A stretch of 64,000 nucleotides of DNA, from the NCBI GenBank assembly GCA_030704615.1, contig CM060734.1, positions 992,001 to 1,056,000 of the forward strand. The letters are read 5' to 3'. The stretch comes from Takakia lepidozioides (Eukaryota; Plantae; Bryophyta). Shown here in pieces: positions 12,409 to 31,182 of this stretch. Below the pieces are notes generated by a model that worked only from the letters and a program-made list of their open reading frames with translations, was not told the origin of the DNA and did no database searches. Each line of letters begins with the position of its first letter. Within the stretch, counting starts at the first letter, position 1. The position numbers and the translations under genes are program-made.

Positions 12409-12493
12409 TGTCGTGCGCATACATATCGCTACACAACTACATCGCTGTCCAAACCACACCACACATATATGCACAATAAAGTAGTCTACCACA
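12409..12493 (-). repeat. Terminal repeat A2 (85 bp, TG...CA) of element 2
   Basis: Matches A1 (12852-12871 plus 20022-20086) and is similar to 11333-11417 and 11776-11860. Confidence 0.92.
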
Positions 12494-12494
12494 A

Positions 12495-12849
12495 TGATAA
12501 GAAAACTAGAAAACACACTGCTCACACCAGAAACAACATGAACCCATTGCTATCACTCTTTAAAACAGAAGTCAAGCTAGGGGCACCCCAAGCTATGGGG
12601 ACTCCACCCCACAACAACCTACACTCCCATCATAAGCACACTCAAATCTAAACGCATGAAGGAGCTCGGTCGCGCAGGCTCAACTCGAGAGAGATGAGCT
12701 GCGCGACTGCCGCTCTCGTGAAGATAAGACGGACCAGGTGTCAAACTAAACTTGACACCTGATTTAACACTTGACCTAAATCCAAGTGTTAAATACAAAT
12801 AACTAGTTTTATTCTAGTTGTTTTCACACTGTGCTTATTTAACTTGACA
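12495..12849 (-). repeat. Repeat B2 (355 bp, TG...CA) of element 2
   Basis: About 7 differences by eye from B1 at 30828-31182. Confidence 0.93.
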
Positions 12850-12871
12850 GCTGTCGTGCGCATACATATCG

Positions 12872-13598
12872 TGTCGCGGCCCTTTGCCTTGAGGGCAGGG
12901 GGTCGGGACACATGAGGGGCTGCCCCTGTGGTGGGGGCAGCGGCAGCGATAGGTATGGGGGGCTGAGGCACCCTTGAGTGCCCAAGGCACTCAGGGAAGC
13001 GGAGGCGCTCACTAGGTGGAGCCCCGCACACCGGGTTGCGGTGGGGGTGGCTCCACAAGGGGTGGTGGTAGCTTCGTGGGACTTAGTGGGGGTGGCATAG
13101 GACTCACCATGGGGGCGGAGACCTCGTGGTGGGAGTCGTGGGGAGTCTTGGGACTCATCACGGTCCATAGGGGCCGTGGTGAGCGGGCCAAGACTCACCG
13201 CGACTCACCACCGGGAATCGAGGGTCTTCGTGGTGGTTCGCCATAAAATGGCATGGCTGGTTGTGAAACCCCCGCGGACAGCTACAGAAGTATATATAGG
13301 GAGTAGTAACCCCGAGAATGGTGCAAGCCCGTTGGTGACCAAAAGCTAGTGAGTAAGCGAGCGAGCCGGAAAGCGACCAAAGAGTGGGGAGCTGTTCCGG
13401 ACTGCCATCTACCAAAGGGAATTCTCCTAGTCCCAATTAGGTGGAGGGTTTTAGAGGGAAGCGAAAGGGGACCGTTATGTCCCGGTGAGCAGCCGAAGCT
13501 CCAAGTTGGCCCGGGCGGCCAGGTTGGGAGTCAGGCGCGCGCATCAAAGCGAGTAACTATGACTTGAAGGGGAGTTTACCGAAGTGGGGTGCGCGACA
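12872..13598 (+). repeat. 5' LTR of the chromovirus
   Basis: TG...CA; TATA-like gtatatata at ~13290. Confidence 0.95.
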
Positions 13599-13600
13599 CT

Positions 13601-13612
13601 TGGTATCAGAGC
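13601..13612 (+). promoter_or_regulatory. Primer-binding site complementary to initiator tRNA-Met
   Basis: TGGTATCAGAGC 2 nt after the LTR, the canonical plant iMet PBS. Confidence 0.95.
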
Positions 13613-13653
13613 TTAGAGTTCAGTACGCGATCGTCCTTGGGATTGGCCTCGTC

Positions 13654-28134: not shown

Positions 28135-28710
28135 CTATCTCCCGCTCACTGAACACTTAAGAAAACAAAGGTAGGTCTGATAGTCTCTCAACTCGAAAGC
28201 TTTGAGACGGTTGCGGGTGTCCTCATTGCGAATGACTGCATCTCCTTCACGCACAACAAACATGTCATTGCTGATGAACCCCTGCTCGTGATTGCCCTGT
28301 GCAGAGCGTATCCGGCTGCAATCGTGTCTGATTGCACAAACTTGTGTAGCTCCTGCTCCTCTGCTCCAGTACACCACGGCCTTGTGGCTGAACACCTTGG
28401 TCCCCGGGGCTGTCTTTGGCTGTGTTCCAAGCCTAGATTTCACCCACTTTGGTATTTCACCTACAGCTGCAGAACTGCTGGCTCCAACAGAGTTCTGACT
28501 GTCCAAGGCGATATTGAGGCCCTCAATGCCAATTACAGCAGTCTGTTGTCTACTGCTAATGCCTGACTCCCAGTATGCAATCAACTCGTCCAACTGTTCT
28601 CTACTCAAATCAGTCTGAGTTCCTTGGGAAACATAAATCTTGTCCCCTTGTGTGCACAGGCTAAGAGAAGAGACCTGCCCTTCAATTACGTCCTCATTTC
28701 CCCCAGCCAT
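28135..28710 (-). CDS. 191-aa ORF of unknown function in the leader of element 2
   Basis: ATG-initiated, element-sense, plausible composition; no motif recognised. Confidence 0.35.
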   Translation of the reverse strand: MAGGNEDVIEGQVSSLSLCTQGDKIYVSQGTQTDLSREQLDELIAYWESGISSRQQTAVIGIEGLNIALDSQNSVGASSSAAVGEIPKWVKSRLGTQPKTAPGTKVFSHKAVVYWSRGAGATQVCAIRHDCSRIRSAQGNHEQGFISNDMFVVREGDAVIRNEDTRNRLKAFELRDYQTYLCFLKCSVSGR

Positions 28711-29459
28711 ACAAGGAGTACATCCACAGATTTGTCTTTCATATAGACCAGCACAGGTTCTAGAAACAGAATTGTGGATCTTTCATGGCACACTCACACT
28801 CTAAAAATTCCATAGATTTTTAGCAGAGTCCTAAAAACAAAAACCAGGTCTAGATTGGTAGATTTCCCCTTTCTACAGCTATCCCCTCAAAAACTGGGTC
28901 AAACAGAGTCCATTTGACAAAGATATGACCAGCCAGGCTCTTTAACATAACACCTTTTTTTTTTCTTTTTTTTTTTCTTTTTTAACACCAAAACGTTCTC
29001 GCCATTACAACCTGTTCCCAGGTTATCTACGGGTTCCCGAGGCCGTTCCTCCCCACAAGACTTCGCCAGTGAGATTCATAGTCCCTTGGGAGGCATTGAA
29101 CAGTCTTTAACCAGCCAAGGGATAGATCCGGCACGGACTGTCAACTCAGCCTCTTCAGTGTAGGTGATTAGAGGATCTGTTGTAGCTGTCATGGAGGTGA
29201 CAGAGGAGACTCAAGGGGCAGATGGAGTAAAAGAACAGGTGAGTGTATCACAAGCATCTGCAGATGGCGTGGTTATGGACTCTCACCATCAGTTTGACCA
29301 TTCTGGAAGTTCTCTAAGGGATGCAGCGCTCCACTCTCAAGTGCCTGTGGCAGACACTGTATCAGAGGTGTATTTGCCTCCCAGCATAAACACACAGGGC
29401 TTTCTTGCTAGCGACACAAGGACAAGCACGGCACCCATAACATCCGCAAGGCTTGATCT

Positions 29460-29600
29460 TATAGCTCCTTGAGTGATCTTTCCGCTTTGGCAATGTGCCC
29501 AGGATACCACTGGACAAGTCTCGTAGACCTGGTAAGGTAGTCTATGTCATCATCCAAACTTTCCCACTTCTTCTGTACTTCCGCAATAGCTGCCACAGCT
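29460..29600 (-). pseudogene. Captured fragment of a chloroplast RbgA/YlqF-family GTPase (DAR GTPase 3-like)
   Basis: LVQWYPGHIAKAERSLKE matches the family N-terminal WYPGH motif. Confidence 0.8.
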
Positions 29601-30465
29601 CTCACCACCGTTGTGGGCTGAGGCCGGGACGCGATGGAAAGGGGAGCATGAGAAGATCGCCACGCTTGCAACCCTGCTGTTGGTTCCTGAGGCCCAAATA
29701 CCTAAGTATGGATGGCACTACACACAGCCCAGTGACCTGCGCTTCAAGCTGGCCCCCTTAATAAGACCGGACTCCCCAATGGTGCAGCACGGACGACATG
29801 CAATTCGAGACGTGTATAACTAGATAACTGTAAGTCTACTTGCGGGCCTGACCCTCAAACCACATGAGCTGCTACTTCTCTTCCTGCAAACCACTACTTT
29901 GGAGTGCATCTACCGCTCTGCCGCTCTGCAGCAGCCCCCGACATCAAGTTGCCTAACACTGCAAACCCAGCTCGCAATTTACCGCTACGTTCTGGGCAGA
30001 CAATCTCTTCAGGATGCAGTTTGTGGACAGTATATCTCCGATGGCATTCACCTCTCAGAGAAACGCCGTCTCTGGATTGATTCACCTCCCCTGCCTTGTG
30101 CTGGCTCCCGCTCCCTCACAAGCGAGCGTTGATCTTGAAGACGTCTCTCCCGAAACAGAGAGGCCCCACATGACTTGTACACCTGATTATTCCCTACTTC
30201 CTGCTCAAGTGGCCACAAATTGGGTTATGGCTTGCAGGGTTTGGTTGTTGTCGCAGCATCCTCGTCAACATTTTCCCAGCTTTGCAGCTCTTGCGCAGCT
30301 GCTTACGTACGCTGAAAGCTCCCAGAGCAGCACCATTGTCTCAAGCGTGCTGCAGCCAGCGTCTTATACAACATATAAGTGTTTGCCGATAGCAGTACCA
30401 CCATTCTTCAGTCTTTTACTGGTGTCATCTCCCAAACCGCCTTGTCTGTCAAAGAGGCTTTCACC

Positions 30466-30654
30466 TCCAGCAATAGTCTTCCCTTCCTCAGCTGCCTTGA
30501 TAGCCTGAACAGCTTGAATAGCTGATTTGCGAGCATGATCAACGTGCTCTACTCTGCGCAGGTCACCGAACAGCTTCAAGGGGAGGGTGGCAACATCACC
30601 AACGGCATAGACATCTGGAGCACTTGTTTTGCAGAACCCATCAACCTTGAAACC
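30466..30654 (-). pseudogene. MDHAR: Captured monodehydroascorbate reductase fragment
   Basis: [60 protein letters not shown]. Confidence 0.9.
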
Positions 30655-30811
30655 TCTTGGTTTTCAAACTCACGCGCAGAGACGACAACTAAATCTGCGC
30701 GCACAGCCCATGGCAACAGCAGGGCCAGATGGACTCCTGCCCCCAAATATATATTATAATAGTGCTAAAAACAAACATCGTATCTAGCTTAGCACCAGCA
30801 CACTAGATAAC

Positions 30812-30827
30812 GCTCATCTCTCTCGAA
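30812..30827 (-). promoter_or_regulatory. Self-complementary primer-binding site of element 2
   Basis: (T)TCGAGAGAGATGAGC directly after B1, complementary to GCTCATCTCTCTCGA inside B (31018-31032). Confidence 0.8.
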
Positions 30828-31182
30828 TGATAAGAAAACTAGAAAACACACTGCTCACACCAGAAACAACATGAACCCATCGCTATCACTCTTTAAAACA
30901 GAAGTCGAGTCAGGGGCACCCCAAGCTATGGGGACTCCACCCCACAACAACCTACACTCCCATCATAAGCACACTCAAATCTAAACGCATGAAGGAGCTC
31001 GGTCGTGCAGGCTCAACTCGAGAGAGATGAGCTGCGCGACTACCGCTCTCGTGAAGATAAGACGGACCAGGTGTCAAACTAAACTTGACACCTGATTTAA
31101 CACTTGACCTAAATCCAAGTGTTAAATACAAATAACTAGTTTTATTCTAGTTGTTTTCACATTGTGCTTATTTAACTTGACA
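30828..31182 (-). repeat. Repeat B1 (5' terminus of element 2)
   Basis: Matches 12495-12849; flanked by TSD AGGT. Confidence 0.93.

Follow-up and report, generated by a model that had tools for sequence, protein, structure and literature searches.

Split direct repeats have been defined for the PAT and Ngaro retroelements as the order A1-int-B1-A2-B2 (PMC4157794), and elements of the PAT, Ngaro and TOC1 types carry a tyrosine recombinase and form no target-site duplication (TSD). To date, a Gypsy element with permuted long terminal repeats (LTRs) has been noted once in passing and never analysed: the legend of Fig. 4c in de Mendoza et al. 2018 (Nat Commun 9:1341, PMC5890265) describes KnitGypsy-Dnmt3 of Klebsormidium nitens as having a DIRS repeat structure together with Gypsy domains. 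That paper gives no breakpoints, TSDs, primer-binding site (PBS) and polypurine tract (PPT) analysis or mechanism, and it reports the element only in a charophyte. Two elements of this kind, termed element 1 (W1) and element 2 (W2), are described here from a 64-kb stretch of the Takakia lepidozioides genome (contig CM060734.1, positions 992,001 to 1,056,000; hereafter the window, numbered from its first letter). In both, a Ty3/Gypsy-type coding region with a DNA methyltransferase (DNMT) domain is flanked by a split LTR, the two parts of which are called A and B.

The order of the repeats in the Takakia elements matches the A1-internal-B1-A2-B2 arrangement of the PAT, Ngaro and TOC1 types, with the internal repeats at the 3' side. 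Unlike those types, with their tyrosine recombinase and lack of TSDs, the elements encode an HHCC-DDE integrase and a Ty3-like reverse transcriptase (RT) and RNase H, end in TG...CA, and are flanked by 4-bp TSDs. Compared with Ty3/Gypsy elements (Metaviridae), they have the RT-RNase H-integrase order, a Ty3-related RT, the HHCC-DDE integrase and short TSDs at TG...CA termini, but not two complete identical terminal LTRs, the 5' end consisting of B only and the 3' end of A-GC-B-A. Like KnitGypsy-Dnmt3, they combine a Gypsy pol and a DNMT3-like domain with DIRS-like repeats; unlike the record of that element, the layout is resolved here to the base and is found in liverworts, mosses and a chlorophyte. 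Kinship with KnitGypsy-Dnmt3 is likely given the DNMT3 type, the Gypsy pol and the same repeat logic, the two being compared by description only. Full-text literature searches returned no description of such an element besides that of de Mendoza et al. 2018. An earlier reading of the window from its letters alone (the original prediction) was not aware of any description in Ty3/Gypsy; to call the arrangement undescribed is too strong in view of the KnitGypsy-Dnmt3 legend.

The split LTR of the Takakia elements

Element 1 occupies 12409-31182 on the minus strand. Its junctions were read directly in the sequence and its repeats were found by self-BLAST of the window; read to the base from 31182 to 12409, the order is TSD-B1-PBS...PPT-A1-GC-B2-A2-TSD. 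The 5' terminal repeat B1 (355 nt, TGTCAAG...TTATCA, 30828-31182, minus strand) has no A upstream and adjoins a TSD copy that reads ACCT on the element strand (31183-31186), the same as the ACCT at 12405-12408 beyond the 3' terminus. B1 is followed directly by the PBS (30812-30827, minus strand), which is complementary to B and not to a tRNA 3' end. Towards the 3' end, the PPT AGGGGGGCGA (20088-20097, minus strand), with a conserved GGGACCTAxCC box before it, is kept in all bryophyte copies, and A1 starts with TTGTGG directly after it. A1 comprises 86 nt in total and is interrupted at its own position 71 by a nested Gypsy element, its first 71 nt lying at 20017-20087 and its last 20 nt, ending in GCACGACA, at 12852-12871 (both minus strand). 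The dinucleotide GC (12850-12851) separates A1 from B2 (355 nt, 12495-12849), and B2 is abutted exactly by A2 (86 nt, 12409-12494), the 3' terminus of which ends in ..CGACA (all minus strand). The boundary of A1 and B2 thereby forms a palindrome, GACA-GC-TGTC (12846-12855), the halves of which are the sequences of the integrated termini. By self-BLAST, B1 and B2 are 98.0% identical and A1 and A2 96.4%. Junction reading and self-BLAST together bear out the layout, breakpoints and 4-bp TSDs that the original prediction had assigned to this element; the single T that it took for a spacer belongs to A, of which it is the first base.

Element 2 was correctly predicted to have the same layout and breakpoints and a CAAT TSD, whereas the opposite orientation of its halves and the loss of about 1.5 kb had gone unnoticed. 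Its 5' part (32484-40303, minus strand) consists of B1 (40303 to 39949), a PBS (39948 to 39933) with 16 nt of self-complementarity and the internal region up to a breakpoint at 32484, and is flanked by CAAT on the element strand (40304-40307). The 3' fragment is inverted (10897-11860, plus strand) and comprises the 3' internal region with the PPT (10897-11331) followed by A (11332-11417), GC, B (11420-11774) and a second A (11775-11860), after which the CAAT recurs at 11861-11864. The two B copies are 96.9% identical to each other and only 84-86% identical to B of element 1. Mapping on a related 5-kb contig (L002) places the end of the 5' part at position 3011 and the beginning of the 3' fragment at 4546; about 1.5 kb, encoding the integrase and the PHD finger, is therefore missing. 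Order and orientation fit what a single inversion of 10897-32483 would give; the sequences at the inversion breakpoints (9888-10897 and 31206-32483) are unrelated repeats. It is likely, if not certain, that the halves represent one original insertion, because the CAAT copies match (1 in 256 by chance) and because of the 96.9% identity of the B copies. Even if the ends stem from different copies, each independently has the permuted end.

Distribution of the permuted layout

Relatives were collected as homologues of the DNMT open reading frame (ORF), which yielded bryophyte loci and many metagenome contigs; the loci were fetched and their ends read. A clustered-representative search returned 262 clusters at E<1e-30, many of them long polyproteins, with Scenedesmus sp. 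PABB004 and Closterium sp. NIES-68, the sole named charophyte homologue, among the named sources. Besides the genome of the window, the family is contained in chromosome-scale assemblies of Calypogeia fissa (GCA_965154635.1), Sphagnum (GCA_963970355.1 and GCA_965612425.1) and Scenedesmus sp. PABB004 (GCA_014905635.1). Complete copies with the permuted ends include two from the liverwort Calypogeia, AGGT-B...A-GC-B-A-GC-B-A-AGGT (L001) and AATG-B...A-AC-B-A-AATG (L003), and one from Sphagnum, ATTC-B...A-GC-B-A-ATTC (L005). In the chlorophyte Scenedesmus (L034), the copy reads CGGC-TGTCAGC (start of B)...PPT-A-GC-B-A, ending ..GCGTCA-CGGC, and its repeats are 100% identical. An empty site is available for this copy, as an uninterrupted paralogue of the flanking tandem repeat has CGGC only once, which directly proves the boundaries and the 4-bp TSD.

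Partial copies, among them moss-like metagenome contigs, conform to the same scheme. A 5'-truncated Calypogeia copy (L031) ends in A-GT-B-A, a Riccia copy (L006) in A-GC-B-A with no 5' B found, and two metagenome copies (L027 and L030) in A-GC-B-A followed by differing flanks, while two further metagenome copies start with TGTC at the 5' end and have no A upstream (L020 and L017, the latter with the TSD TTGA). Two Sphagnum copies have a single A, B...A, at 6359-16886 of L032 (TSD GCTT/GCTC) and 9554-15480 of L033 (TSD TTAC). At each of the nine informative 5' ends, the element opens with the TGTC of B; no A precedes it, and the PBS follows downstream. Ten of twelve 3' ends are A-xx-B-A (one of them A-B-A-B-A) and the other two are A only. 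TSDs are present in every complete copy, eight being perfect 4-bp duplications and one matching at three of four positions. The case that would have spoken against the original prediction, a family consisting mostly of copies with ordinary A-GC-B LTRs, is not what was found: no copy with an ordinary LTR at both ends occurs among the 9 informative 5' ends and 12 3' ends, and neither solo B-A units nor mirror isomers were seen among the A and B copies elsewhere in the window and in all loci. Chance is excluded because 10 further loci from four other genera have the permuted layout, every one of them between flanks of its own and with its own TSD. Together, the copies examined, a small sample of 7 full copies plus partial ones, indicate that the split permuted LTR is the normal integrated form of a whole Ty3/Gypsy clade, from a chlorophyte to bryophytes (liverworts and mosses), and point to an integration route out of the ordinary.

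Some copies depart from the common form in the number of their 3' units. The 3' end of L001 (15454-16429) has an extra B-A unit, giving A-B-A-B-A with all units 97-98% identical, which could reflect either a three-LTR intermediate or unequal exchange. The single A of L032 and L033 could result from integration of a unit-length form or from A-by-A deletion, routes that these copies do not distinguish. Among more distant DNMT-bearing loci, L007-L016 yielded no A/B repeats, and L017-L019 had disrupted ends only; such copies appear to be old or to belong to another subfamily. L007-L016, which are metagenome contigs of the Joint Genome Institute (JGI) from ten samples, have the same gene set and an A-like 3' end (..GTACGACA) followed by flank. 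In a draft assembly of Marchantia polymorpha (L004), a DNMT-bearing element is accompanied by an 88-bp AT-rich direct repeat (7091-7178 and 17827-17914), which adjoins the element's start, TGTCATG, at the 5' side and its end, ..CGACATTT, at the 3' side; assembly gaps (runs of N) in both repeat regions prevent the layout from being read. A metagenome scan for the A-end and palindrome pattern identified five true members among eleven matches (L020, L022, L026, L027 and L030), the remaining six being rejected as chance matches in unrelated DNA. Viral contigs were scanned twice with the DNMT domain; the first scan found no relative, and the second gave only distant DNMT matches, 24-52% identical over portions of the query, which were not inspected further and showed nothing of the permuted-LTR family.

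Reverse-transcription signals and the B-A junction

A conserved PPT immediately precedes A in all lineages; it has the form GGGACCTAxCC...AGGGGGGCG in bryophytes and GGGGGGT in Scenedesmus. The sequence directly after B is complementary to a site about 150 nt into B, or 338 nt in Scenedesmus. In element 1, this self-primer sequence, GCTCATCTCTCTCG, lies in B1 (31019-31032, minus strand) as a 14-nt exact complement of the PBS and is followed by the conserved TTGAGCC, probably marking where R starts; TTGAGCC follows the primer sequence of B in every bryophyte copy. Self-complementarity extends over 14-16 nt in the window copies, 12 nt in L001 (primer site 7197-7208), 11 nt in L003 (2197-2207) and 10 nt in L034 (9310-9319), and starts at, or within 2 nt of, the end of B. 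The length seen in the window was reached in none of 2000 shuffles. Complementarity of PBS and B is kept through different sequences in W2, L001 and L003, and a compensatory change from T/A to C/G separates the PBS/primer pairs of L001 and L003. None of the element PBS sequences compared starts with TGG, as a tRNA-type PBS does. This is the signature that Tf1-like self-priming would leave, with R starting inside B about 150 nt from its beginning. As in Tf1/sushi self-priming elements, the PBS directly follows U5 and is complementary to the putative R start of the same RNA rather than to a tRNA; Tf1-type elements differ in having ordinary LTRs.

Since the PBS lies directly after B and A directly after the PPT, the LTR made by reverse transcription, i.e. 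the LTR of the cDNA, reads as A-GC-B, in agreement with what had been deduced from the Takakia copies alone. The integrated ends do not coincide with the ends of this LTR. They lie instead at the palindrome GACA^GC^TGTC, as had been predicted for the window and as is the case in the relatives as well. The PPT/PBS-defined ends of the Calypogeia LTR are not TG...CA (GTTGG...CGTTT). By contrast, Calypogeia, Riccia, Sphagnum and Scenedesmus all retain the CA-GC-TG core, and this core and TGTCA are both conserved from the chlorophyte to the bryophytes. Deviant palindrome centres are found in L003 (AC, 16461-16470) and L031 (GT, 16252-16261); in these older copies, each is a C-to-T transition in a CHG context, the change that deamination of methylated cytosine would be expected to cause.

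The integrated element carries one junction of U5 end and U3 start (B-A), near its 3' end. The B-A junction connects the base that immediately precedes the PBS with the one that immediately follows the PPT. It is exact in all seven cases that could be checked (W1, W2, L001 twice, L003, L005 and L034), with 0-1 ambiguous nucleotides and no filler or deletion; the L034 junction was assessed with a scripted test and the remaining junctions were read by eye. Within a copy, A1 and A2 have private variants in common by which it can be told from other copies (L003 versus L031, W1 versus W2). A2 is therefore re-made in each cycle from the template of A1, in the manner of an LTR pair, and is not inherited separately through a read-through RNA. 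No polyadenylation signals were found in A and B of Scenedesmus.

Coding content

The internal region of element 1 between PBS and PPT spans about 10.7 kb, with all coding features on the minus strand. In Pfam, its domains follow the order RVT_1, RT_RNaseH_2 and RT_RNaseH, then Integrase_H2C2 and rve. RT and RNase H are encoded by two overlapping, frameshifted ORFs (21719-23304) with Ty3 as the best match among solved structures (7e-46), and the integrase (21031-21672) comprises an HHCC zinc domain and a DDE core. HHCC is kept, and the residues D, D and E align to D128/D185/E221 of the prototype foamy virus (PFV) integrase and to the Ty3 integrase. No tyrosine recombinase domain was detected in any internal ORF at E<=1. 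These results confirm the claim that the element encodes a DDE integrase and no tyrosine recombinase.

Upstream of the RT lies a DNMT3-like C5 cytosine methyltransferase domain (PF00145, 1.7e-12; 23419-24783), for which DNMT3A/3B are the best solved structures, and downstream of the integrase a PHD finger (PF00628, 4.8e-11; 20347-20670). The integrase-PHD arrangement is also present in L002 and in the Scenedesmus pol. It is shared with green-algal Gypsy-7a_cRei and REM1 of Chlamydomonas, in which the integrase has an adjacent PHD finger (the PHD being reported in the Gypsy-7a_cRei polyprotein); unlike the elements considered here, Gypsy-7a_cRei is recorded as having two LTRs of roughly 2 kb, with 8 bp as their only difference, and no DNMT domain is listed for it. 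Further upstream, a possible aspartic protease ORF (24671-25486; gag-asp_proteas, E=0.05) and a gag-like ORF (25562-27259; Retrotrans_gag, E=0.026) give weak matches below the Pfam cut-off. zf-CCHC and Asp_protease are on record for relatives, whereas the window copies have only sub-threshold gag and protease matches. Element 1 is frameshifted and is not active itself.

The position of the DNMT domain varies between lineages. It precedes the RT in bryophyte elements. In both the metagenome polyprotein P0126 and the Scenedesmus pol P0133, by contrast, it comes after RNase H and before the integrase, the full order in P0133 being RT - RNase H - DNMT - integrase - PHD. In P0140, Pfam reports no DNMT, yet a match to the window DNMT (within 21031-24783) sits between RNase H and integrase. 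The differing position suggests either two acquisitions or a move of the domain within one clade sharing the split LTR.

Probable integration at the internal palindrome

Judged by the ends and TSDs of the integrated copies, integration is shown to use the halves of the internal palindrome as ends, with a 4-bp staggered target cut of the kind made by a DDE integrase. The best explanation overall, held with a confidence slightly above an even call, is that the integrase integrates a joined-end cDNA at the conserved CA-GC-TG palindrome. In this scheme, once reverse transcription is complete, the U5 end would be joined exactly to a U3 start, and the palindrome of the PBS-proximal LTR would supply the integrase with both of its ends. 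Each strand would be cut after CA, leaving two recessed CA-3'OH ends that have 2-nt GC overhangs, and the opened cDNA would then be inserted by ordinary strand transfer. The 5' polarity of these overhangs, already noted in the original prediction, follows directly from the sequence. Topologically, the process would be equivalent to a 2-LTR circle being opened inside one LTR. Support for integration of a joined-end cDNA comes from the same layout with its own TSD in L001, L003, L005 and L034, and from the A-GC-B-A 3' ends of L006, L031 (with the altered centre described above), L027 and L030. The TGTC 5' ends of L017 and L020, the integrase residues together with the Ty3-like RT/RNase H, the self-complementary PBS, the conserved palindrome core and the variants common to A1 and A2 also speak for it.

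There is precedent for internal cleavage of this kind, as the integrases of PFV and human immunodeficiency virus type 1 (HIV-1) are reported to cleave a palindromic LTR-LTR junction internally (PMC1180852, PMC1905944). In the 2-LTR circles of PFV (Delelis 2005) and HIV-1 (Delelis 2007), a retroviral-type integrase is likewise reported to cut an internal palindrome with two CA/TG ends, which yields ends competent for integration. In both viruses, the palindrome is the circle junction, has a 4-bp centre and is cut to restore the ordinary LTR ends, whereas here it lies inside the LTR, has a 2-bp centre and its cutting would permute the element.

The original prediction had specified a closed, end-joined 2-LTR circle cut at the palindrome. 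Integration at the palindrome by the element's own integrase is well supported; a closed circle made by end-joining is not established. In this model, host end-joining would produce a covalently closed 2-LTR circle, the integrase would cut either copy of the palindrome, and the linearised circle would integrate. The layout, the B-A junction, the TSD and the cut geometry would all be explained, retroviral integrases offer the same precedent for internal cleavage of palindromic junctions, and the single-A copies L032 and L033 could stem from 1-LTR circles. A closed circle, however, has two palindromes of identical local sequence, and half of the insertions should then be of the mirror form B-A-GC-B-PBS...PPT-A; this isomer is seen in none of the seven copies with two-LTR content (p about 0.008) and at none of the nine informative 5' ends. 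The exactness of all seven junctions is likewise untypical of end-joining, and nothing should select on a junction that is re-made in each cycle. A closed circle is thus regarded as unlikely. Because one isomer only is found and the junctions are always exact, an asymmetric joined form made by a polymerase is probably to be favoured over random host end-joining into a closed circle, speculative as this preference is. RT might make such a form by switching template end to end, with the plus strand passing onto the minus strand at the 3' end of the latter; other candidates are a nicked circle and a linear cDNA whose 3' LTR is in tandem. In the last case, cuts at the first palindrome and at a later one would give B..A, B..A-B-A and B..A-B-A-B-A and no mirror form.

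Several points weigh against integration of a joined-end cDNA at the palindrome. Every step after reverse transcription is deduced from integrated copies, and the sample is the small one given above (7 full copies plus partial ones). No sequence feature was found that would explain the joining of the ends or the sole use of the PBS-proximal palindrome. The B..A and A-B-A-B-A forms are equally obtainable by unequal exchange between A repeats after insertion, and the copies with a single 3' A (L032 and L033) are compatible with several routes alike. In vitro, moreover, internal sites are cut poorly by retroviral integrases.

A different possibility is that the B-A junction is inherited via the RNA, with transcription reading through from B2 to A2, an unusual mode of reverse transcription, of the sort proposed for DIRS, PAT and Ngaro elements, giving a linear TGTC...GACA DNA and the integrase acting on true ends. 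This would account for the single isomer and the exact junctions, and PAT and Ngaro elements have exactly this arrangement of split direct repeats, A1-int-B1-A2-B2. Against it, the private variants shared by A1 and A2 fit re-copying from one template and not separate inheritance, no standard strand-transfer scheme was found that would copy a 3' A tail given a PBS after B and a PPT before A, and no polyadenylation signal was located that would place the RNA 3' end in A. Inheritance through the RNA is therefore considered doubtful at best.

It might also be supposed that the layout arose after integration, by unequal recombination, by formation of a tandem LTR with 5' truncation, or through misassembly. 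Unequal exchange clearly occurs in this family (A-B-A-B-A in L001, the single A in L032 and L033) and the window is heavily rearranged. Nevertheless, base-identical breakpoints are found in independent insertions from five genera in different assemblies, the 4-bp TSD directly flanks TGTC and GACA in each copy, one copy has an empty-site paralogue, and the repeats of the Scenedesmus copy are 100% identical; owing to the TSDs and the recurring breakpoints, a post-integration origin is effectively refuted. Mobilisation in the style of DIRS/PAT/Ngaro by a tyrosine recombinase acting in trans, with the integrase irrelevant, has the repeat layout as its sole support and is scarcely credible in view of the eight perfect 4-bp TSDs and one three-of-four match (tyrosine recombinase elements make none), the TG...CA termini, the HHCC and DDE residues kept by the integrase and the lack of a recombinase domain in any internal ORF.

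Genomic surroundings

The Gypsy element nested in A1 (12872-20016, plus strand) is unrelated to the permuted element and forms no part of it, as judged by its LTRs, TSD and domains. Its 728-bp LTRs are 99.6% identical, it has its own 5-bp TSD (CAATA/CGATA), and it encodes gag-PR-RT-RH-IN with an SH3-like C-terminus on the plus strand. A second copy of this element at 2350-7265 is internally rearranged, in opposite orientation and 95-97% identical; it lies within the first copy of a 1-kb direct duplication (1760-2350 plus 7266-7686, and 9888-10898). A 1.8-kb inverted duplication of 98.9% identity links 1-1762 with 7987-9756. These duplications show that the region has recently undergone segmental rearrangement. 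At 46176-50808 and 54246-54799 there are satellite-like arrays with a 120-bp period, in several blocks of 60-90% identity, and a 52-bp tandem repeat; the local G+C content falls to about 0.40.

Implications

The architecture of the Takakia elements and their relatives, combined as it is with a DDE integrase and TSDs, means that the integration enzyme cannot be told from split direct repeats alone. LTR finders look for identical terminal repeats with TSDs on either side; here they would pair B1 with B2, miss the TSD and set the boundaries wrongly. Annotations of bryophyte and algal genomes therefore probably contain too few of these elements. The Scenedesmus copy with its 100% identical repeats suggests a host in which the mechanism could be tested directly.

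The broader reading, for which the case may as readily hold as fail, is that of an ancient chlorophyte-to-bryophyte clade of DDE-integrase Gypsy elements in which a joined-end cDNA, whether a circle or a tandem LTR, is obligatory and is opened at a palindrome internal to the LTR, split direct repeats having arisen there independently of tyrosine recombinases. A productive role of the LTR-LTR junction has been debated for foamy viruses and HIV. If this reading is true, the junction form, held to be a dead end, would be a productive integration intermediate in a natural system, and the split-direct-repeat architecture, so far a hallmark of tyrosine recombinase elements, would have evolved independently with a retroviral-type integrase.

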